Shown: positions 14,902 through 36,259, counted from the stretch's first letter. The stretch: DNA of 64,000 nt from Bugula neritina (GCA_964035545.1 OZ037766.1:29514640-29578639); one strand, 5' to 3'. Notes: a model not told the origin generated them from the sequence alone. Program-made: numbers and translations.

Positions 14902-17504
14902 TTAAAGACACATGGCACCTATTTGGAAAATGAGAATGAGAGCGGTGAGCACCCATCGGATGACAAGGTCGGTGAATGCAAACTCATACGCTGTTTTATG
15001 ACAGTAGAAACTCTTAGAGCTGTAGGCGCTGTCAAAGGTAAAGCAGCCGTCTGTGGCGTTGGTCTGTGGAGTTAATACACCTTTGTCACATGTCTTCAGT
15101 TGGAACACCCACACACTTCCTATAAATATAATCATGATTCAAAGTAAAACAGAAAAACAATTAGGATATATGAATACAATAAAAAGTGTTTATACTTTTA
15201 TTTGACTAATGAAAACAAGAAGCAAAAGTACCATAGCCGGAGGTTGCAATTAAAATTTTGTACAATGTAATGGTGCTACTACCAGAAATGGGTATTTTTA
15301 GCTTGATTTTGTGTGTTAACACAACATTGTCATTTAACAGTTTTGATAGCAACTGCAAGACATACGTTGAACTGGATAAAAGTAAAATTTCATCGACAAA
15401 ATCCTAAAAAAATTCATAAAATGGCAATATTACTCATGTGTGAAATATTGCACACACATTTTATCTGTGCATAATAATATAAATCACAAAAACTTTGCAT
15501 GAGTGCCAGATTTGAAAACCAGAATTTATTGCTTTATTGTTGCTAGAAACTATTTTTAAACTTGATTTTCGTTCAAATCAATGATGCTGAAAAGTTGATA
15601 ACAGCTAGTGTTTAAGTTATCTTCACTTAAACTCCGATAACCTTTTATTAGCTATATTAAGCTCATGTTAATCAACATGTTGAAGTCGTTAACCCTATGC
15701 AATCAATGTTGTACAAGCAAAGACTTAGCCCAGTTGGATTGAAAGATGCCTTATTGCCATGATCAATGACCGCAGCTTGTAAAGTAAAATCTGCAGAGTT
15801 TATTCACTCTATTCAAACTGTGGCCAGACAATGCTGCTTTCATATGTCAAAGGTTAATGATATTTGAAAGGTTTTTGTTTGCTATCCCTTCCATTTATAA
15901 CTAGGAATTTATAAATAGTAAGTAAACTTTAATGGTAGCCTTACAAGAAAGCTGGTGGGAAAATGAGCAACTATATTAAAAATATGTATATAGCATAATA
16001 GGAATAAGAAAGATATAAATAGATTTAGAATAAGTAGTGAAAGCAACAATTAGCAAAGTAAAATCAAATTTTAGTTTGATTAATCAACATTATCACCATG
16101 CTCAAGACATTGATGTCTTCAGCCTATTACATCATTTGAAATATCAGTTACAAAAGTTAAGTGCAAATTTTGACCAACTTTACAGTGCAGTGATTAATGA
16201 AATTTAATACTGATACATATTGACCAAAGAAGAGTCTGATTATATGCCTGCTGGCCATGCCAGTCCTTTGAATCCATAGTTATTCTATATATATGTTACT
16301 ATATTACTAGTGGCTTCAGACAGAACATAGAGATATGCACTTCCCATGCAGCTGTACAGCCCAGTTTGATGTATTAAGATATTCACTATTATTAAACTAA
16401 TAATAATGTAAGCTTTTAATTAACATGAAGTATTGGATGTTGTATATTCAATAGCATATATACCTCTACACACCTGCAGGTAGTACGGTATGTATACTAG
16501 ATGTATATGAAGCTACCTTGAAGGCTGTAGGCCCTATACATATACATGTGGCCTACATTTGGGTAGTGAAATAAACTTACCACAAATTAGCCATGCAAAC
16601 AGAAATATTGACACAATGATTCCACAGATGTCAACACTAGAGGCTCCACCTTCATCATTGCTTGCTAAAATATATTATATAATATATACAATATCTAATA
16701 TTTATACTATATATACATTATATTATATAATATTATATTATATTTTATATGTGCATGTGCGTGCGTGTATGTGTGTACATACATACATACATACATACAT
16801 ACATACATACATACATACATACATACATACATACATACATACATACATACACACATACACACATACACACATACACACATACACACATACACACATACAC
16901 ACATACACACATACATACATACACACATACATACATACATATTCATACATACATACACATACACACATACACACATACACACATACATACATACATACAT
17001 ACATACATACATACATACATACACACATACACACATACATACATACATATACACATACACACATACACACATACAAACATACATACATACATACATACAT
17101 ACATACATACATACATACATACACATACACACATACGCACATACACACATACACACATACACACATACACACATACATACATACATACATACATACATAC
17201 ATACATACACATACACACATACACACATACACACATACAAACATACATACATACATACATACATACATACATACATACATACATACATACACATACACAC
17301 ATACACACATACACACATACACACATACACACATACACACATACATACATACATACATACATACATACATACATACATACACATACACACATACACACAT
17401 ACACACATACAAACATACATACATACATACATACGTACATACGTACATACATACATACGTACGTACGTATGTATGTATGTATGTATGTATGTATGTATGT
17501 ATGT

Positions 17505-17541
<37 letters not shown>

Positions 17542-17543
17542 AA

Positions 17544-17595
<52 letters not shown>

Positions 17596-20000
17596 ATGTG
17601 TATTATATGTACATATTATTGTATATATACATGTGCAAGTCACCCAATCACTGGACCATAATAAATGCACCTAAATAATCAACGAACCATTGCAAGACTT
17701 AGGTCTTCATAAAAAAATGACATTACAAAACCTTCATGCCTCTGATTTCATAATTGACTATTAATTGTAGTTGGTTACAAAATTTAAGATACAATAGTTG
17801 GCTATCATATTTCTCTAAAAGTTCCCTTTCACGCTCTACATAGCAGAAATTATCCACGCCAATATCCTGGTACAAGGGAGGTGTCAAAAAAGAAAAAATT
17901 CCCTATTACCTTATAAGAATATAATAGTTTAGTATAATTCCTGGAACCAAATTGTCCCAATACATTTTATAGTTAACGATGATTTGTAGCACTCTAAACC
18001 TTACAACGTAAGTTTAGTCAGTTTAAAGTGACCCTGTAATATTGTATTATATCTCAGACAGCATCTCATCCAATTTATCACCTGCTTAGATTATTATGTT
18101 TGTTTTAATTAGACCATAAATTGCAGGTTTTGGTTATTTCACTTATTTAATTAGCATTACCTGAGAGCATGTATGACTAGCAGCGGAAATATATTATAAG
18201 ATTACTATATGTTACATTTTCTCTATAGCATAAATCTATGCGTACAAGTGTATGTTACAGTTGTGCTAAATTTGAGTTCAGCCATCAGCTAGTCACATGT
18301 AACAGCTAGTTATTGTGATAATATAATTTTAAAATACTAAATTTACTATTATTTTATAGCAATAGCTTTTCATGATGAATAATTTATAATACCAATGTAT
18401 CGAAAAGACGCGATATGTGCAACACATTTTAACTTTCATAAATAGGTCATGCAATTACTAACTTATCATGAAGAATCAACATGAGATGCAATATATTTTA
18501 GTTTTCCAACACGTCAATTGAGGAATTTTACAGAAATACAGAAACTCACATCTAGATCTTAGTTTAGCTCCATCACCCCCTCCGGAGCAAAAGGCGAAGA
18601 CACCAGCAACTATGAGATATATTGGTAGGTATCGCTGTACTGGGCAGTCACGGAGATACAAGGCACCTATAACAACAGTTTCATCAAATAGGCCAGCGTG
18701 AAACTTTCTACACATATTATATATTTAAATACAAATCATCTTCTAATTAAAAAATATTTCAATATTTATACTGAAGCTCTCTGAATGATTATATCTAAGT
18801 ATCTGCTGGCAACGTTTGAAAATATTTTTGTGAAAAAATCACAGACCCTTATTATACTTACTTTGATGTAAAACATAAGCTTTTCGGTATGCAAAATAAA
18901 TCAACCAAGGTGTCAGAAAATAGCAAACTGTTTCCTTGTTTACTAGATTTTAATGCTTTATATATGTAGATATTTGTCTCTTTTTGGTTCACACTGACTT
19001 TCAAATATCATGCATAGCCTACTTTTTAATTGTAATTTTTTTATTATTATTGAGGCCTTGCAGTGTTCTTGAATTGAGATAGTTTAGCAAAGTGCTAGCA
19101 TGCAATTTCTGTTAAGCTAGCTCCAAAGAAATGTATTGAACTTTATAAATTTATTGCTTCTGCCTTATAACTTTACCATAACTATAAGTGTATAATCTTT
19201 TGTTCATATATTTATAGCAATTAAGTCACAATAACCAAACTATAATAATTTGCGAACTTTAAATGACGCAGAAGTTGAAATACCTCAATCAGTTCAAATT
19301 TAATCTAGCTTTAGAAAACATGGATGTTAATAGCAGCCAGTTGAACGATGACCTAATCATGCACCTATATTTCATACATTCATAGTCATATATACATTCT
19401 TAGCTTTTCACAATAAAGCTTGACTACCTTTGAACATGAACCATGCAGCAAACAATGTGAAAAGAATAAAAATCTTGTGTTGCAGGTATTTATGTAGTTA
19501 TAAACTTTTGAAAAATATTCTATGCTATTTGGTTTTCCTATGAATGTATTTACACAATAATATTGTTTTAAGCAATTAGTGCAGTACGTGCAACTTTAGC
19601 GTATAAAATTTATAAAACAAATATAAGTCACGGCACAATATTGTAGCAATTATGATATCATAACATACTGTATTTATACCAAAATATTTTATAAATTATT
19701 ATATTTCTTCTTGTATGGCTGATGTCAAGGAATTTGAGCATGTTATTGTGAGTCATACTACGTAAGAGTTTGCAGAAAGGATGCTGTGTAGGTTTGTTAT
19801 TGTGGTAGAATAAATGTATACATCTTAATTCTTAAAATTTAGAGTACATTTGCAGTGTATGGTAAGAGGCAAGGCAAGTGGAAACAATACTCATGGTACT
19901 CTTATTACTTACCTACAGCTATTTCTCCGATAGACAAGGTAATACTAAGGAGAATCACTATGACTGCCACAATTATCAATATTTTCTTTCCTGCAGACAT
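14902..20000 (-). CDS. TMEM272-like membrane protein, paralog 3 (short form, ~168 aa)
   Basis: Exons 20000-19913, 18666-18550, 16664-16581, 15119-14902, phase-1 introns. Translation [53 protein letters not shown]...[15 protein letters not shown]...[13 protein letters not shown] probable 5' exon ends at 20831 (GTAAGT donor). Confidence 0.8.
16778..17595. repeat. Compound (CATA)n/(CACACATA)n/(GTAT)n/(TA)n microsatellite
   Basis: Seen directly; source of the spurious HTYI/CMYV ORFs. Confidence 0.98.
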
Positions 20001-22452
20001 TTTCCTAGCTTTATATCTGTAAAATATTGTTAAGTTGGATCTCATAAGACTTGACTGATTTAGAAGGAAACTTTAGTAAAAGAATTACGAATTTGTCTGC
20101 TATAATGTTTCAAAATAGTAGCAAAATATAATCAAGGTAAACAATTAGTGAGAGTGAGCTGGGTGTTGCTATATGACCAACTTCCCAAGTTCTTACTCTA
20201 AACCCCACCTTAAATTTTCAAACTAGTGAATAAAATTTGTGATCTAATTTTTTGCAGATATTTAGTGCCAATATTTAAAAAAAATTCAACTCAATTTTTA
20301 AACTTTCTACTTGTGAATAAATAAAGTGGAAAACTATACTTTGAAGTAAGCTACAGATCAAAATTATAGGCTTCTCATTTAATATTATAAAACTTAAAAC
20401 TGTATTTGTAAAAGTTATGCAGTTTCAACTTTAAGATCACCAAAGCACATTAATATAGCCAAATGTTAAAGTCAGCTATAATACAATATGCAACTACAAA
20501 AGAAGCAACTTTAAACACAAAGCTAAAATGAGTTTAAGGATTTGCCCAACTATAAAACTGCATTGCACATTATATTATGCATTACACTAAGCATTACTTT
20601 ATGCATAACGTAAACATTATAAACTAAATTTTATACAGTATACATTATACAAAGCACAATACATTATAAGTTATATCATTGTAAATGTAAATGAGTACAA
20701 CTCGTTATGTAGTGATAAAAATAAATTCCAATTAAATTGATATAGCAGTGAAATTATAGCAGTTTTGCTATTCTTTTAAACAACAGTAAGTCACACTGAT
20801 ATAGAGTTATAATCAACCCTGACAACTTACCGTTTGCCTGGTGGTGCGAAAAGAGGAGAACTGGGAAGTAAGGCCTGAAGCCTATATACTGAACTATTAT
20901 AGTAACCAGCTAGGCGGATGAATCTATATAGGTTGTTATGCACTGTAGATTCTGTACGATACATTGCACTCATTGAACTAGAAATAATTTAATCTCCAAC
21001 CAATCAAATCTTTCTGTAGCTGTAAATGTTCTGCACTGCATGGTTGTGCGGTTTTCAATCGCAGGCAATATCATATTATATGAAAATATAATTGTTTGGT
21101 GTGTCATATAAGTCATGCTAGTGATAATTCGTATTGTCTTTTTCGCACCTTGCAAAATATTATAAATCAAATGTAGCATGAGACGAACAGACTCTTATTA
21201 GGTGTAAATTTATTGTAGCATGGCGCTTCCCAAGGAATCATAAAGCATTAACACATGCATCAATAGCTTAATTAAATGACTCTCCATCAATTCCATTAAC
21301 GTGGCTCTTGAATCGTTAAAGCATAATCTTTTTGAAAAAAGGTTTATAAGCTTTAATCTCACCGGAGTAATTTTACACAAAAAGCAATAATTTAGGCTTT
21401 TTGAGTCAAATAGCTTTTTTTCATGTATGTTTATAATAAAGCGAAAATATAAAGTATGCATATATATATGAATAAATGTAAACAAACATATAAATGGGTT
21501 AGTCAAATAGACAATTCAAGAAGAAAAATGCTTGTAGACTGAGATCTCTCATAGCCATTGTATGGGACTAAGGTCGGGCTTTAGCTTACCAGCCCTTGAT
21601 AAGACTTTGATTTATAGGTAAAGAAAATTGGGTAATTTACTTGAAAACGTTAGTTTTAAAACAATTTTAATGAGCTGTTCTAACGGTCGATTTAGTTAAA
21701 ATAATCATAATGAAATTCTAACTTTAGTTGAATGAAATTGTATTATTGCCCAAATGCCACATGTTATCATAATATATATACAAAGAATATTTTGGGAGTC
21801 ATCTTACCTAGAAATACTATACAATTTGATTTACAGTGGAAAAATTAATTGTGCATTTGATCCTGTATTTTGCTGAATATACAGATATAAGGTGAATTAA
21901 TGTTAATAAAAGTAGTATATAATTAAAAAGCAGTATTGCTGAAGCTTTAAATCAAGCATTGTTTTACTACATTATAGGCGCAGCCTTCAAAATATAAGGT
22001 GTATATACATATAATATAGTCAAACAAGTAGAAGCATTACATCTATTGGTATTCCTCAATTAAGCTTTTTAAACCACACATTAAGCTGATCTTATAATAA
22101 TTTTACTTATAATTAACATGAGATAACTTTCAACTAATTGATATAACAGTAGTTGATGGTTCAGAAACTAAACAAAGTAACACATGCAGTTATAATTATC
22201 TGTTTTTATTCATTAAGATTATTTGATAAGCAGATGCAGTTATTTGCTTTACATGATAGCACAGCTTTATTCACATGTATTAGGCAGCAGAATATTGTTA
22301 TTAAAAGATTTGTAAAGTGTTGTTGAAGACAATATTTAAACAGAAATAAAAAAACAAAAAAAGGACTTTTAAAGCAGCTGCATGAAGTTTAGCACTGCAC
22401 TTATAGCTGTGCTAGAAACAGTGGAAAGTGCGAAAGGTGTTAGAGCGGTCTT

Positions 22453-24475
22453 TTATTTACTGCTGGACTCATTTTTATCGTTTCTCTTTATGTATTCCTT
22501 TAAAAGCTCAATCAGCAACTCTTTTTGCATTTCTTGCCTGAAACACAAAAGTTTGATATTTTGTTGGAAGTAGTATTTTGTTTTATAAGAATTATAGAAA
22601 CCACGTAAAATAATGAAATTCTAAAAAAAGCCCATGAGTATGCAAGCATATAATAATAATTTAGCTTGAAAGTAATTGAAAAGCTGCATGTTTTTTATTT
22701 GATCTACTCAATGTTGACTTTTCTAGAAAATTATCTGTTTATGCTTTACATCCATTGCATTATTGAGTCACAACATTTAGAAAGTTATACCACACATATA
22801 ACATGCTTTCAATACAATGATAAACTGACTCACATGAATATATGATATATAGAAAAGCTACATGTACATGTCTGTACTATTGTTTTTAGAGTCTGCGTTT
22901 GAAGTTAGAAAATGCAATTCCTTTTGTTATCTAATTTTAATAAAATAAGTATATAGTTTTGAATCTACAAACCCATCTAGAGGATCTGTTGGTGCTGTTT
23001 CTATCTCTAAGGGAAGGGATTCTCGTCCATAGTTTACACTTTCTTGCGTTGGAATGTCATAGTCACTGTATCGTCTTTCTAGACTACACCAGGTATTGAA
23101 AGAATGAACTTTATTACAAATAACTGAACACTAAAGCATGATAAATAACTAGTTTATAATTAAAATGCTTATAATATAATAATAAACTTTCTGGGTGTTT
23201 TATCTTCTCTCAATTTTTTTGCAGTTTTAAAGGACTAGAGCCATTATTAATTTAATTAAAGCATTCGGAATTATAAATTTAATAAATTTAAGACAATTGG
23301 TTAATTAATTTTAAATTTAAATAAATTTAAAAAGCATTATAAACTGCTCTAATATAGCGTTTCACACCTGTCATAAAATGGGTTTGAATCTTGAATCACT
23401 CTCTTTCGCTGACCACCCATATAACGAGCTTGACATATGAGCTGCCCTTGGCGGCAGCGACTGGTTGAAGCTCGTTTGACTAGAGGGTCCTCCCTATATG
23501 CTGCCGCTAGTGCATTCCACAGTTCTCTAGAAATCAAGACACAGCTCACTGTTAGATAAGTTTCATACACATAGCATTCATATAGCAATTATAATACTTA
23601 ATGCTGACTGCAAAGTTGTTTTAAAATGCTAAATTTTTAGTTTATATCCCTACGTCATTACAATGCTGGGCAAAAAAGTTCTAGAACAATTTTACTATTA
23701 CCTAATTTTTTATTAACTTTTATTAAGTTATATATATATATTTTTATAATAAATTTTCTTTAGGCTGAATGCAACAAAAAGAAACACTATTTTAGTATTC
23801 TAAAAAGCTTAATTAGGTAGAAAAATGTTTAATAAACTTTTGGAAGATTAGATTTATTAATGGCTTTATTGAAAATAAATATATTTTAATTGCTTGTTTT
23901 CAAAGTATTCTTTTATATGCTAAATACTGTTTGTTTGTAGATTAATATTTCTTATAGATATGTATTTCTTTAGAAACTCACTTTTAAACATAATTGGAAA
24001 AGAACTTTAGATTCATTATTTATCTAAGTTGTTTATTTACATATAGTAATGCTGAAAGCTATTTATTTAACTTATATCAACTAAGTTTTATTTCAAAGCT
24101 AAATATTTAATTCAAAATTACAATGAGGTATATTGATCACATATATCTGCATGTTTACCAGCGAAGCTAGCTACTGTTTACAAAACAATTTGCAAACTTT
24201 ATTATTTTTAGAGCCAAGTGCAATAAGACAACCTGAAATTGATTCAATTAATTTGTTGAATGTTCCATCCATCCTGTCAGAAAACTGTTATATAAACAGA
24301 TCGTGCAAGGCCATTTCTAGACAATTTTATGTTGCATGAATATAAGTTTAAAAAGATACATAAATACAAACTTTTCGGAAATTTGGTGTGTTGCAGAAAC
24401 GCTGGTATAAGTCAGGCAGCAACATCCAATGACCATCAGCATCATTAAAACATGCCTGTTAGTGCTGTCACCCAT
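22453..24475 (-). CDS. Putative neuropeptide/peptide-hormone precursor (152 aa, 4 coding exons)
   Basis: Exons 24475-24372, 23526-23368, 23083-22973, 22537-22453; three phase-2 GT-AG introns; 459 nt, open to TAA. Translation MGDSTNRHVLMMLMVIGCCCLTYTSVSA-THQISEKELWNALAAAYREDPLV-KR-ASTSRCRQGQLICQARYMGGQ-RKR-VIQDSNPFYDSLE-RR-YSDYDIPTQESVNYG-R-ESLPLEIETAPTDPLDGQEMQKELLIELLKEYI-KR-NDKNESSSK. Signal peptide ending V-S-A and several basic cleavage sites. Confidence 0.75.
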
Positions 24476-25940
24476 CTTTGATCAAATTACCTTTGCAGAA
24501 TTTGCTACAAAAGGCCAATAATTTTTTTTATAAATATGCTTCACAACTGATAACATGCTTGACCTAGCTGATTTTTTATCTTGTGTTTATTAGTCGATTT
24601 TGACTTTTAGCATATTATACGAATGAATTAGGTACAAATGAACATAACATTCTAAAATTAATGATGAGAGGTTACAAGCTGTTGTTACATTGTAGGAGTT
24701 GTCTTCCCTGCTTCGAGTGTTGCAATTGTTAAAATATTTTCGTAGTTTTCTACTCCTTGACATTCCTTTTGATGTTTGACTAGCTCACCATTTACAGCCT
24801 CATATTGATAAGGCTTTAAGTTTTGGAACTAAGAGCTAATCTAACGTGGACGTCCTCTTGAATGGGGTTGTAATGGAATAGAGACAAAGGCTCACTGAGA
24901 TATAGAATAAACTAGAACTTTAACACTCACTGTTTCACTGTTTTTCAAAAATAGTAGTTAATGGAGTAGAGACTTTTTAGGTCAAGTTATAGTCGTAGAA
25001 GAAATGACTATACACTAGATTTACATAAGTTCATAAATTTAACACTTCTAACAATAAAAGAGCCAAAATAAAAAATTCAACTTATTTTCTTAGTAATTAT
25101 AACGCAGCTCTTGTTTTAATATATTCTAACTTTTTACTATTTCAATATAATTTATAGTTATGAGATAATCTAGCGTTTTAAATTGAATGTTTGGTTTTAT
25201 TAAAATTTTGGCATAACAACGGGGAGCTATAGTACACAAAAAATTTCCCCTGTCACCATCATGGTCTTTATTAACACCCCCATGACAACTAAGCAGCTTT
25301 AAATTTTGCGCATCTTATTTTATTGACAATATTGATGGAATATGGAAGGAGATCCAAATGGTTCTTGTTATATGTTTATAGGTAAAACTCTAAGCACATG
25401 GTTAACACCTGCAGTACAATAAATTTTTTTGTTACACCTTTACTATTTTGAGACTATAGAGCTATAATTAGCGCACAATAAGTTATACAAACATTATGAG
25501 ATATTATTATTACATCTGTTAGTTTATTATGGCGTACATTCCCTATTCCTATTTTGAAATAATATATTCTCTATATTATAGATTAATTCCATGCTGATTA
25601 TGGTAATAACGTTTTGCTAATTGACCAACAATGTTGAAGCTCAGTTATGCAATAATAAAATAATATACAGAACGCCAGAAATTTAATATATTTCAAGTAT
25701 AATTTAACATTTAATGCTCGGTTTTATTGAAACACGTGCTATTAAAATTACTGCGAATTGAGTTTATACTTATTTTCCCATTATAATATTTTATAAGATT
25801 TTTTTGATCTATATAGTCAAAATTAAAATTTAACCAATGGATTTAACTTTCTTTAACTTAGCAAAACTTTACTTACCTTAAACTATTATAGCCAATTGAA
25901 TAAAATTTATATTTATTCATTATTGAATTGGATAACTTAC

Positions 25941-26130
25941 TTCAACGTGGTATATACGTGTAGACAATTCTTGAGCAAGCGCCTGGGAAGCAAATGTGCC
26001 TTAGCTGATGAAGGGGTCTTTCATGTATAAACACGGAGTAGTGGATAGGAGTGATTGCGTAGATACGATGAGTCGGAACTGTTTGTGTTGACGTGATGAG
26101 TGGGCTGTCTGTTGTATCAGTACTAATCAC
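25941..26130 (-). promoter_or_regulatory. Candidate non-coding first exon and promoter of the prepropeptide gene, with a CRE-like site
   Basis: GC-richer island ending in a consensus donor (GAA|GTAAGT, exon end 25941). TGACGTGA at 26089-26096. The ATG exon has its own acceptor (exon start 24504), so an upstream UTR exon is expected. Confidence 0.4.
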
Positions 26131-27559
26131 TTTAAATTGCATCTCTTACAACTTATTCAAGAGTCTCTCTTCCCATCCTCTCTTTATCTCAAGTACTCTC
26201 AGCTAATCTTTATTATAGTAGCCATGTGCTATAGAAAACTCTGATGCAGTAAGCATGTGATGTAGATAGACTGAAAAGTAGGCTTGTTTATTACAAGTTT
26301 TTCTACTAGATGGGCTTTTACACAGGATTACTTTGATACAAAATATTTACAAATATTTTACTTCAAAGAAAACATTACTATTGCATAAAAACATGGCGCA
26401 ACTTTATTATTGCAATTGTTTATAATATAACTTGCACAAAATATTTAAATTTTGATAAAATGTTTTTTACAATTTCTGTGACATTATTAGCTTAATGATA
26501 GCGTTTTAATCCTATAATTAAGCACAGGAATTCGTGAAGTTCTATAACTGCTAAGAAGCTTCTATAATATCTTCTATATTATGATGATCCAACACTATGC
26601 TATGGCCCAGCAACTGTTTTAGCTTATATAAATGCAAAAGCTGTCTTTAATTAGCCTGACTATAAAGATGACATCACGGAGTTGAGTTAAACAGCAGCTA
26701 CTATATATAGGTTTGTGTCAATCAATGTTTGAGTGACATGCCTTGTTGCACATCTGAGAGTAGCCTTTGATCTGTTGGAGATAGCCTGAGCTCTAACTTC
26801 TGTGTGTTCTGTTATCCGCAGCCACGCTTTTTAGTTTTTACTCTCTAGATGTAAAATACCGTTTCAGCCCAACGTCTTTCTAGGATAAAGCGTAATTAAA
26901 GATTTTAAATATTTAGCTTTTGTTTGGAGATGGGTTGTGGCTGGCATGGAAACAGAGAATCTACTATAATTGTTATCCACAATACACTCATTTTTCTTTT
27001 TGTGTTGGGTAAAAATGATTTTTTTTTCTTCACTATTGCATGTAGTTGCATTATGATAACTTTAGATGGTATAAAGCAATGATACATCACCACAATTGTT
27101 ATATCTTCCACTTGAATAAAGTTGCAAAGTTGTAAAGTTATTGTTACTCGATGACATTTGCACCAACTGAACTGGCCACCATTAGTATCAAGTGCAATGA
27201 GTTATTACTTATTGAGTCACAGAGCCGTTATAAACTTACTAATCTGTCTGACTCAATGATTTTTTTGATGCTATTTGGGTGCAGTTCTCTTTGAAAAACC
27301 TTTCTTTAGATTTATACTGTGAAAAATTGTTCTCTTATCATAGTTTACAAAATTAAAGAAACTTTTCATTGCAGTAAAAACTCTATTAATGAGTTTGAAT
27401 GTACATGATGAGTGAAAATACACAAATAGCTAAAATTTTGAAAGACCTTATTGTATAAATATATATATAGTTATATATCTTGAACACATAACTTGAAATT
27501 ATTTGATGTTATGTTGAATAACACAATTTGTAAAATAAGATATGTCATTCCAGGTATCA

Positions 27560-32112: not shown

Positions 32113-34715
32113 GTTTGTTTGTTTGTTTTTATTTTGTAATAGTCGGGAAAAAATTAATTGAGAAAAAAAAAATAAACAAAATGACAGGGCCTATGGCGCA
32201 ATTATAGCACTGTAGCTAGTCGAGGCACCGAGCCATGAATGGTTGACAGTTTATAAGATTTCTGTTTAGGTTTTTGAAAGTTTTAGCAACTTAAAAAGTA
32301 TTATTTTTTTATCTGGAAATTTGCCATTAGATGGTCTCTCAGGGCAAGTTTGAAACCAGCCTCCCTCTCCACAGCACGAATAGAACTAGGCAATTTATTC
32401 CATAGCGACGAACATTGGAATTCCACTCTTCGTTGACCTGCAGCAGTTGATGATGGAGGAGTTTGTAGGCTGAACTCTGAAAATCTTGTGGGCTAGTTAT
32501 GTGTGAGATGTGTTAGTTGAGAATAGTAAAGTTTATGTGAGAGCAGTATTAGTTTGAATTTGTGTAGAGTGTGAATAGGCATGATTGAAGAACTAAGAAA
32601 CAGTGGTTTAGATGGGGAAAGGTGATGCTTTTTATATATAATTCTCAGTATTTTCTTTTGCAGTAAATGTAGTGGTTCAAGATAAATGTTTGCTGCATTA
32701 CCCCACGATTCTAAGCAATATGTTAATTTAGAATTTACAAAAGAGTTATATATTTGTATTAGAATTTTTCTAGGTAGGTGATTGGAACATTTACTTATCA
32801 AGCCTACTAAGGGCCTTAGGTTTTGACAAAGTTTGCTGCAATGTTGTTGCCAAGAAAGATGTGAATCTATTATAATACCTAAGAAGGTAGTTGGTTTTAC
32901 TTCCACTAATTTTTTGTTAAACATTTCTAAGGCAAAGCCATTTAAATCTTGTTTATTTTGCGCTGTTTTGATTATCATGTAGTTTGTTTTACTCATATTT
33001 ACAGTTAATTTATTTTTATTGCACCAATTTTCAATTTTCTTTAATTCACAGTTTATGATGTCCATATTGTTTAATAGATTTTTTGATTCAAAGAAGAGGT
33101 TCGTATCGTCGGCAAATAATATAGGGTCTAAATGCATAGTTACATCTGGAAGATCATTTATATAAATAAGGAATAGTGTAGGACCAAGTATGGATCCTTG
33201 TGGTACTCCACATGTGATATGAATAAAGTCAGAATATGTGTTGTTAATAATAGTAGCCTAGACTGTTGACGATTGGACAGATAATTTTTAATTAGCTTCA
33301 CACTGTGACTTGAAAAGTGGAGCATTTTTAATTTAGCTAATAAGATTTCATGATTTATTGTGTCAAAGGCCTTACTAAAATCGAGGAAAATTCCAGCTAC
33401 AGAACTACCATTGTTCATGGCATTTAAAACCTTATTTGTTAGATTAATTAAGGCAGTACTTGTTTTTCTATTTCGTCTAAAGCCGTACTGCTTATCAGTT
33501 AAATAATTTTTGCTTTGTAGAAAATTTACTATTTGCTTATTTAAAATCTTTTCAGCTATCTTACTGAAAACAGGTAATATAGAAATTGGGCAGTAATTAC
33601 TTACATCAGTAGCTATGCCTTTTTTGTGTAGAGGAACAACTTTAGCTTTTTTTAGTTCATTTGGAAAAGCGCCATCATTGATAATTGTGTTTATAATGAA
33701 AGATGAGATGCAGATATTTTTATTAGGTTAGTGGGAGCTAAATCTAATCCTGCAGCTTTGGCTGGGTTTACATCTTTAAGTAAGCTTTCAATGACTGTGC
33801 TTTCAATATTTGTAAAGCTAAACTGTTCATCAAGTTTTTTATCTGACTTCCGAGCTGTAAAATCAAAATTGTCGTCAGTGAATTTCTTTGATAACGTTGT
33901 TCCTATGGAAGTAAAGTATTTGTTAAAACTGTTTGCTATGTCCTTATCTTCAGTTAGTGTAATATTTTCAGATGTTAAGCTTTTAGGAGCATTTAATCCC
34001 TTTGATCGATTTTTTCCTAGATGTTCGTTTATGACTTTCCAACATTTACTAGAATCTGAAGTATTTTCAAAAAAAGATTCAAAATATGAGGTCTTGGATC
34101 TACGCAAATTCTTCGTAACTAAATTTTTTAGAGTTTTATGTTTAAATTTAAGTTTCAAGTTTAGAGGGGAATTTAAGGATTGTCTATAAACATAATCCCT
34201 TTTGTTCATCAGCTTAATTAATTCAACACTAATCCAGGGTCTTTTATTTGTTTTAAGTTTGCGTGGCCAATTTGTTGAGAATTTTACTAATGGAGCATGT
34301 TTATTGCATAAATCCATAAATATTTTAAAGAAACTGTCATACCTAGAATTCACATCTTTCTTGGCATATACTTCGGAGTTCCAGTCTACTTTAGAAAGAT
34401 CTTTCAAAAATAGTTCTTCATTTATTTTCTTATAATTTCTAATGTTTGTAGATTTAGTTATATTAAAATAGTTAGTTAAATTTTCTATTTTGATAAAAGT
34501 AGGCAAGTGATCTGCTATGCTTGTTGTTATTGTTCCAGATGTTAAGAATTTATCATAAAAATTAACATTTATATGATCTAAGCAAGAATTGTATCGTGTA
34601 GGAATCTGAATTGAATTTATAAAATGAGAGCAGGATAGGATGTTGAGGTAAGATGTACTCACAGGATCGGATTTAAGAGTGTCGATATTGATATCACCTA
34701 TATATATGTTCTTGC
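32113..34715 (-). mobile_element. 5'-truncated, frameshifted non-LTR retrotransposon (CR1/L2-like LINE, ORF2 remnant)
   Basis: AP-endonuclease tail motifs GDINID, PTRYNSCLDHI, ADHLP. RT motifs YCPISILPVFSK, QYGFR, FLDFSKAFDTINH, GVPQGSILGP, LFADDT, FLGIIIDSHLSW. Split over ORFs 33691-34746, 33158-33418 and 32493-33137. 3' tail of AATAAA plus (AAAC)n on the minus strand near 32113-32135. Confidence 0.93.
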
Positions 34716-35364
34716 TGAAATTTGACCACACCCACCAAACCAGCAAATAAAAATGTTTTGAAAATATTAGGCCACGTTGAAATTGCTCTGTTTCAAGGAA
34801 ATTATGTTTTTAGGCTGTTAGCCTATTGGAAGTTTCATAATAACACTTGAATAATTCTTCTAATATCAATAATAAATATTTTAGTAGCATCAGCCTTTGG
34901 TTGGCTTAAAGGTCTAGGTGCTGTTCCTCCAACAACACCAAACTAGCCCCTCTATGTTGGATGCTACTTAGTTAGCAGTTCTGTAAACAATCCACCAATG
35001 AAGAGAGAGACAGAGAATGTTCCTTATATGGTAGTAGAACTCTGCATTGGTTTGTGCATTGTAAAAGGTAATATACTGATTGACAACTATATATATACAC
35101 TGTTTATACCTTATTAACTGATGCACTGTGAATCTACTATAGTATTTTATTGTATAAATATGACAATTTTTATTACTATAATATGTCTATGCAGTTAAAC
35201 CAGCAAAATTTCATTTTAGAAAAAAAAATTATTGCATATAAAATAAAAATTTATATTGCTTTATTTTCTGTAATTTGGTGTTAGTATATTACCCCCTGTT
35301 TAAGCTATTATCCAAGCTAGTTAATTTGAAAACATAGGTGTGAACAATCCATGCATCATGTATG

Positions 35365-35467: not shown

Positions 35468-36259
35468 ATTTTCAATTTCTTCTTTATAACTTGGATACTC
35501 TCAAAGTATGAAAATATATAAAAGTCTTCAACACTTGGCTGCTAAAATCAACATCTAATCATGCTATTAAGTTTGTATACTCACTATACATCTGTTGACT
35601 GGAGATATAATATCACGATGAGTCATGCTTTAGGTCAGCCATATGCTGGGTTAGATGCCGGAGGGAGATGTTCGTGTGGATTGAGTTATGACAGAGATGG
35701 GAGCACATTTGATAACCTCTGTAATGATCAGTGTACAGGAAACTCAACTCAGTTGTGTGGCTCTAGCATAGCTATGAGCGTCTACCAGACCTTCTCAGGT
35801 AGGAAATCTTCAGTTTTTGCACAAATAAAAAATGCACACATGCATGATGTGTACTGAGTACATGCATGGCTAATATTTGTCACAAAATTCATATATAAAT
35901 ATACATTATACATAGTCAAAATTTTCTACAAAATATAATCACACATGACTAATATTATTTATTACAACATTGAGTATATATATAAAACACATTGCTAATA
36001 ATTTATATGTTTACACATGTGAAGCCTAAATTTGATTTCTTGTTGAACGACTTTTTACAGCAAAGCATCTTTTCTTTGTTTACGGTTGAAATTTATCATA
36101 AGAACAATTCATTAAGTGTTTCTAATTTTTAAGTAGCCTACTGCAGTGCTTGCATATTTTAATTTTCGCTTCAAACAACTATAATAAACTATATTTTCTG
36201 TTCATTTCATATATTATGTTATTTCTTAGCAGTTGTCATTTTTATTGTTTATTTATTAG

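Follow-up and report, generated by a model that had tools for sequence, protein, structure and literature searches.

A small gene of four coding exons lies on the minus strand of a 64,000-nucleotide stretch of the Bugula neritina genome (GCA_964035545.1 OZ037766.1:29514640-29578639; the whole stretch is called the window, and positions are counted from its first letter). The gene encodes a protein of 152 residues, which we read as a precursor of secreted peptides, probably one that yields a disulfide-closed peptide of 21 residues (the 21-mer). The gene model is already in GenBank; what is new is its reading as a peptide precursor. The locus is well supported as a gene, and it is a good candidate for, not a demonstrated case of, a signalling system.

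The gene and its counterpart in a second genome

The four coding pieces join into 459 nucleotides, that is, 152 codons and a stop, across three GT-AG introns. All three introns are in phase 2 (the codon is split after its second base), and the split codons specify K, S and G. The parts of the gene, in the order of transcription, are:

24526-24532, minus strand: TATA-like element, TATAAAA within TATTTATAAAAAAAA, 51-57 nucleotides upstream of the ATG, a putative promoter element
24475, minus strand: ATG in the context AAAGATGG, with an in-frame TGA 9 nucleotides upstream
24475-24372, minus strand: exon 1, coding part, 104 nucleotides (34 codons and two bases), with the leader MGDSTNRH-VLMMLMVIGCCCL-TYTSVSA and the first part of the propeptide; whole-codon translation MGDSTNRHVLMMLMVIGCCCLTYTSVSATHQISE
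23527-24371, minus strand: intron 1, phase 2, GT..AG
23526-23368, minus strand: exon 2, 159 nucleotides, with the propeptide ELWNALAAAYREDPLV, KR, the 21-mer, RKR and VIQDSNPFYD; whole-codon translation ELWNALAAAYREDPLVKRASTSRCRQGQLICQARYMGGQRKRVIQDSNPFYD
23084-23367, minus strand: intron 2, phase 2, GT..AG
23083-22973, minus strand: exon 3, 111 nucleotides, with (S)LE-RR-YSDYDIPTQESVNYGRE and then an acidic, variable spacer, SLPLEIETAPTDPLD; whole-codon translation LERRYSDYDIPTQESVNYGRESLPLEIETAPTDPLD
22538-22972, minus strand: intron 3, phase 2, GT..AG
22537-22453, minus strand: exon 4, coding part, 85 nucleotides including the TAA (22455-22453), with (G)QEMQKELLIELLKEYI-KR-NDKNESSSK; whole-codon translation QEMQKELLIELLKEYIKRNDKNESSSK, then the stop
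22266-22271, minus strand: AATAAA, 182 nucleotides past the stop, the polyadenylation signal presumably used

A protein with the same structure is known from a second genome. GenBank entry KAF6021249.1 (locus EB796_020442), a ‘hypothetical protein’ of Bugula neritina with 146 residues, contains all four exons with the same three junctions; in a search of 1.84 billion protein representatives, exon 2 matched it with an E-value of 2e-27 and 52 of 52 residues identical. The entry was predicted by AUGUSTUS with transcriptome hints from the draft B. neritina genome (PMC7576161), and is thus an independent prediction, not proof of expression. Contig VXIV02003083.1 of the draft (GCA_010799875.2) aligns with the window across the entire locus. 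With gap columns left out unless stated, the two genomes agree at 78-89% of positions in introns and flanks and at 90-95% in exons; the single values are 85.5% for intron 1 (76% counting gap columns), 88.8% for intron 2 and 78% for intron 3, which has many indels. All six splice dinucleotides, the start context, the TATA-like box and the AATAAA with its flanks are kept in the second genome. The stop codon TAA reads GAA there, and the frame extends by five codons.

Substitutions between the two genomes were tallied for each exon over its whole codons, one codon at a time. Exon 1 contains four synonymous and no non-synonymous changes, and exon 2 ten and none (its 10 nucleotide differences in all). 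Exon 3 contains 4.5 synonymous and 6.5 non-synonymous changes plus an in-frame indel of 3 nucleotides, the sole coding indel between the genomes, and exon 4 two and three. The six amino-acid changes and the indel of exon 3 lie nearly all in the half that forms the spacer. Over all exons, pN/pS (the ratio of non-synonymous to synonymous differences per site) is 0.125 (Fisher p 2.5e-8), at an exon dS (synonymous divergence) of about 0.17-0.35. All 14 of the substitutions in exons 1 and 2 are silent, an outcome with a probability of ~7e-10 under random placement. Because the substitutions are overwhelmingly synonymous, the frame is read by selection; together with an orthologue that has the same junctions, this pattern rules out a chance chain of open reading frames (ORFs). 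The genome (216,009,554 bases in 321 pieces) holds one copy of the gene and no paralogue. On these comparative grounds we take the gene to be genuine, conserved, single-copy and under strong purifying selection. The 21-mer itself shows four synonymous and no non-synonymous changes, and its invariance despite four silent changes argues for a constrained ligand.

The GenBank model begins at an internal Met (MMLMV...; second genome 8448-8477). The upstream ATG (MGDSTNRHVL) is kept in both genomes and gives a better signal-peptide n-region than the internal start. Over window positions 21000-26500, introns and flanks of the two assemblies named Bugula neritina diverge by ~11-22%. The draft reportedly represents type S and comes from Virginia. 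The two genomes differ as cryptic species do, or else the sample contained a different Bugula, the source of the draft contig. Farther upstream, ~1.45 kilobases from the ATG, a block of 258 base pairs (window 25919-26176, minus strand; second genome 6687-6959) is 91% identical between the genomes, above the surrounding introns. The draft annotation treats this block as the first exon of an 85-residue gene that ends 7 nucleotides before the ATG. We do not count that gene as part of the finding, its ORF in the window being broken by a 1-nucleotide indel and stops; the block may instead be conserved non-coding sequence, or a 5' exon that is not translated.

Architecture of the predicted precursor

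The features of the protein that bear on processing are:

24392-24475, minus strand: predicted signal peptide, 28 residues, cut after VSA according to hydropathy and the -3/-1 rule (a rule of thumb)
23477-23472 and 23408-23400, minus strand: basic sites KR and RKR on either side of the 21-mer, read from the sequence
23409-23471, minus strand: predicted main product, ASTSRCRQGQLICQARYMGGQ, a non-amidated 21-mer with a C-x6-C ring and three Arg
23076-23071 and 22488-22483, minus strand: further basic sites, RR in exon 3 and KR in exon 4, read from the sequence

The leader has a charged n-region, a hydrophobic core of 13 residues and a c-region (Kyte-Doolittle 9-mer means of 2.5-2.9 over residues 8-21), and the predicted cut between V-S-A and T agrees with the -3/-1 rule. 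After it come a propeptide of ~23 residues, KR, the 21-mer, RKR, VIQDSNPFYDSLE, RR, a stretch rich in Tyr and acidic residues, the variable acidic spacer, an amphipathic segment and, beyond KR, a short tail. In exon 3, acidic residues strongly outnumber basic ones (nine D/E against three K/R). Cys is found at residues 18-20, within the hydrophobic leader, and otherwise only as the two Cys of the cassette KR-ASTSRCRQGQLICQARYMGGQ-RKR. The general marks of the precursor class are thus in place: a predicted signal peptide, and a small protein, otherwise unstructured, whose candidate peptide lies between a dibasic and a tribasic site.

The 21-mer is basic and hydrophilic (isoelectric point 9.7; grand average of hydropathy, GRAVY, -0.64), with a calculated monoisotopic mass of 2311.07 Da when oxidised and 2313.09 Da when reduced. 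It ends in GGQ-RKR and would be non-amidated, because no Gly precedes the basic site. Cleavage at a single basic residue usually goes with another basic residue at P4, P6 or P8. A Gly-Arg in exon 3, considered as a monobasic site that would give a Tyr-amide peptide, was judged unlikely, as there is no basic residue at any of these positions.

In the reading that we favour with moderate confidence, the protein is a secreted prohormone cut at four basic sites, and its principal ligand is the disulfide-closed 21-mer, a neuropeptide or hormone. The leader would be removed after VSA, convertases of the furin/PC type would cut at KR, RKR, RR and KR, and a carboxypeptidase would trim the basic residues. 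The main product would be a basic, non-amidated peptide of 21 residues in which one disulfide closes the C-x6-C ring; it would serve as a neuropeptide or peptide hormone, with a G-protein-coupled receptor as its most probable target. We infer secretion, cleavage, the disulfide, the cell type and the receptor; for cleavage and the disulfide we lean on the general rules of prohormone convertases.

Most of what the initial annotation had said of the gene and its product stands. The chain of four exons with three phase-2 GT-AG introns and 152 residues was reproduced in every detail by translation. The cassette KR-[21-mer]-RKR is present, followed by RR and KR sites and with the Cys pair outside the leader confined to it, and the prohormone layout was found as described: a signal-like leader, dibasic sites about a two-Cys 21-mer, and an acidic tail. 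The gene had also been called hidden, which is partly right: exon 2 alone is visible as a useful ORF (79 residues, 23349-23588, the only sizeable one), but GenBank already holds the B. neritina hypothetical protein. The expectation that conservation would be confined to the Cys peptide and the flanking KR and RKR was not borne out; little or nothing has changed in exons 1 and 2 or in the first half of exon 3 either.

Searches and rival readings

In the search of 1.84 billion protein representatives, exon 2 found no true relative beyond the Bugula orthologue; two weak matches, to a repeat protein and to a 24-residue stretch of a protein of 2021 residues, were taken for chance. A word-based search of 5.8 billion proteins with the orthologue and exon 2 returned nothing further. 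The ESM Atlas model of the orthologue is disordered (predicted local distance difference test, pLDDT, 0.51). When ESM Atlas clusters are compared by language-model features, the ten nearest annotated ones are all neuropeptide or hormone precursors, among them CCAP, galanin, CCHamide-2, neuromedin-B, FMRFamide-related, corazonin and kisspeptin. The best neighbour is a CCAP cluster (PF11105) at 0.92, with 181 of 256 features shared, a second CCAP cluster scores 0.91, and CCHamide-2 and two neuromedin-B/bombesin clusters score 0.89-0.90; scores near 0.9 also arise in 4-10% of shuffled proteins. The peptide strings were not found in the main texts or in the nemertean, brachiopod and phoronid precursor lists, and neither the one survey of bryozoan neuropeptides nor the other literature searched reads the gene as a peptide precursor.

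Several of the results count against a prohormone with the 21-mer as its principal ligand. Neither the single exons nor the orthologue has a match in Pfam at E-values up to 10 (in a library that contains no CCHamide model), and the gene is not among the 11 precursors cloned from B. neritina (Wong et al. 2016; PMC4990251). The feature neighbours show no dominant family, the top one being common to only two of the ten best annotated neighbours, and exon 2 alone scores nothing above 0.88. Because of this scatter, and because of the chance scores of shuffled proteins, we let the neighbours suggest the precursor class, not any family. The peptide has no C-terminal Gly for amidation and is not repeated in the precursor. 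The N-terminal propeptide and VIQDSNPFYDSLERRYSDYD, in the VIQDSNPFYDSLE-RR-YSDYD region, are conserved along with the 21-mer, and conservation cannot single out the active peptide, because it was measured against one relative only, and that too close a one. Because these other parts are conserved as well, co-released peptides may matter. Finally, the case for expression and for splicing as modelled is a comparative one; the sole public run found contains the entire stretch, introns included, with no difference and no joints, and is most likely the assembly's own DNA source.

Many invertebrate antimicrobial precursors carry an anionic C-terminal propiece, and the insect peptide thanatin has 21 residues and a C-x6-C loop. 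The product could accordingly be a host-defence peptide, or another non-neuronal secreted peptide, in which a cationic disulfide loop is kept inactive by an anionic C-terminal propiece. The basic 21-mer, with its three Arg, and the acidic exon 3 would suit this reading, and neither a signal peptide nor dibasic processing is specific to neurons. But the 21-mer is hydrophilic and only weakly cationic, the gene is single-copy and no antimicrobial family is found among the feature neighbours. Immune effectors usually evolve fast, and the 21-mer is invariant; we regard this reading as distinctly unlikely. The protein might instead be a small secreted or membrane-anchored one that is not cut into peptides, its basic pairs being incidental. 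That conservation spans almost the whole protein rather than the cassette alone would agree with this, as would a leader that could serve as a signal anchor. Against it, four di- or tribasic sites occur within 124 residues and are set exactly round the sole Cys pair, the predicted structure is disordered, and the spacer is variable and tolerates indels, which is typical of prohormones. An uncut protein is, in our estimate, highly improbable.

Bugula is a major fouling organism whose larval settlement is under nervous control, and Bryozoa are among the phyla least explored for peptide signalling. A conserved, single-copy precursor provides a concrete disulfide-ring ligand for synthesis, localisation and orphan-receptor tests. 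If the peptide belongs to one of the two families closest to it in the comparisons below, EP/CCHamide or CCAP, it shows how far such families drift; if it belongs to neither, it is a new family and an extra signalling system, in a phylum with an almost unknown peptide complement where several canonical families could not be found. The one dedicated bryozoan study cloned 11 precursors, in which the only two-Cys ring peptide is of the vasopressin type (PMC4990251).

Other features of the window lie outside the gene. At 16559-17670 there is a low-complexity repeat of ~1.1 kilobases with HTYI/CMYV runs in all frames and a GC skew of -0.375. Long retroelement ORFs occupy 32493-34746 on the minus strand; one of 214 residues matches the end of Pfam RVT_1 (E-value 8e-7, just under the cut-off), and one of 351 residues upstream of it has no Pfam match. 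An ORF with a WSC domain (PF01822, E-value 2e-9) at 35561-35854 on the plus strand is probably an exon of a neighbouring gene.

Comparison with known peptide families

Families were compared by eye with lophophorate and nemertean precursors (PMC8557429 supplement) and with the criteria given in PMC6617912 and PMC3434067. The initial annotation had recognised no known family in the peptide, and we agree: there is no Pfam match, and the motifs of CCAP, elevenin, allatostatin-C, calcitonin and whitnin are absent. It had also dismissed EP/GGNG, and this was a little too fast; three of the five criteria for that family do fail, but a brachiopod EP shares CRQ and GG-N/Q with the peptide.

Elevenin (L11) resembles the 21-mer in being a non-amidated two-Cys peptide with Arg after the first Cys and an aromatic residue four positions past the second. 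In phoronids and brachiopods, elevenin has the form C-[RW]-K-x-x-[FY]-x-P-x-C-R-G-x-[WY] and a ring of eight residues (PMC8557429 supplement), whereas by eye the B. neritina peptide has a ring of six, no Pro and no C-x8-C-R-G. Three genome matches to an elevenin pattern were rejected, one as an EGF-like exon and two as strings without convincing gene context. These two elevenin-like strings, HCSKELFYPLCRGILFTG-stop (L013 1498-1554, C5:8070392-8070426) and CWNGFFKPRCRG (L011, C3:17167217-17167251), have no clear signal peptide or processing site nearby; they may have arisen by chance or belong to an elevenin gene that is not annotated. With allatostatin-C/somatostatin, the C-x6-C spacing is the only likeness. 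In spiralian allatostatin-C the peptide ends the precursor, the ring is hydrophobic and F or Y follows at once (PMC8557429 supplement); here the peptide is not last, the ring is not hydrophobic and neither residue follows directly. Calcitonin/DH31 peptides have an N-terminal ring, a helix of ~20-25 residues and a Pro-amide, and here eight residues follow the ring and there is no P-G-basic. The whitnin precursor (SPTR/PKYMDT/ERYM; molluscs and annelids) is likewise small, has several dibasic sites and contains a single disulfide-bonded peptide, and R-Y-M-G, the only string in common, also starts the molluscan ERYM peptide (PMC3434067), which may be chance. In that amidated peptide Y-M-G stands before a 12-residue ring, and the parts of the whitnin/SPTR precursor come in the order SPTR peptide, PKYMDT, ERYM peptide; here the order differs and there is no PKYMDT-like peptide.

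Two families call for closer weighing as possible origins of the gene. A diverged CCAP-type precursor would have kept the arthropod architecture while its ring peptide changed beyond recognition. The top feature neighbours are the two CCAP clusters, and the size (~140-155 residues) and order are alike: signal, propeptide of ~20 residues, KR, disulfide-ring peptide, RKR, short peptide, dibasic site, acidic stretch and amphipathic helical tail. The arthropod layout is a lead only. In addition, strict back-translated patterns for the canonical peptides FCNxFxGC and FCNxFGC matched only chance strings in the genome, all without processing sites; the sole genome match to the Pfam CCAP model (E-value 0.35) was rejected as antisense to another ORF. 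The core x-F-C-N-x-[FY]-x(0-1)-G-C with amidation is nevertheless lacking: the invariant P/x-F-C-N of nemertean and arthropod CCAPs is absent from a peptide that reads SRCRQGQLICQ, the ring is x6 against x4-5, and no amidation is predicted. The PF11105 hidden Markov model matches neither the exons nor KAF6021249.1 at an E-value of 10, and with two of ten best neighbours sharing the top family, that family is probably wrong by the search tool's own caveat. A CCAP origin seems to us very unlikely.

The gene might instead be a strongly diverged bryozoan member of the EP (excitatory peptide/GGNG)/CCHamide family, acting on a receptor of the EP/CCHamide type. In both, a small precursor carries one copy of a two-Cys ring peptide towards its N-terminal end, and a long, partly helical C-terminal region follows. 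The five hallmarks of the family were taken from PMC6617912. Two of them are found, a two-Cys ring (C-x6-C) and Gly-Gly after the second Cys (C-QARYM-GG-Q, with Q where EP has N); the other three fail, as there is no amidation Gly, no position directly after the signal peptide (the propeptide of ~23 residues and KR lie between) and no aromatic residue or His in the ring (RQGQLI). The C-x6-C spacing is that of arthropod CCHamides such as GCSAFGHSCFGGHGKR, the ring starts with CRQ as in the EP of the brachiopod Novocrania, KCRQWSSHHCWGGNGKR (PMC8557429 supplement), and CRQ and GG-Q line up with brachiopod KCRQWSSHHCWGGN-amide. The feature neighbours include CCHamide-2 and the two neuromedin-B/bombesin clusters, whose receptors make them the deuterostome counterpart. 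Nowhere else in the genome did a strict scan detect a canonical peptide of the form C-[FWY]-G-G-[NH]-G-basic-basic; scans of this type, the one for CCAP included, can miss looser variants and peptides whose coding sequence an intron divides. Reported exceptions in the family include a spacer after the signal peptide and one peptide without amidation (PMC6617912). Still, the letters shared with EP, noted by eye, are few (CRQ, GG). Such an origin would imply a retained ring, an insertion of four residues separating the second Cys from Gly-Gly (five residues here against one), loss of amidation and gain of a propeptide ahead of the ring peptide, and we hold it to be unlikely.

On sequence, EP/CCHamide is the least bad fit among the families compared. 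We nevertheless give a somewhat higher probability to an orphan family, or one restricted to the lineage, than to a diverged EP/CCHamide or CCAP member. It is possible, and we suggest it only tentatively, that the gene founds an unrecognised neuropeptide family, its ligand a non-amidated C-x6-C ring peptide with its own receptor, either restricted to bryozoans or present elsewhere in lophotrochozoans in forms too diverged to see.

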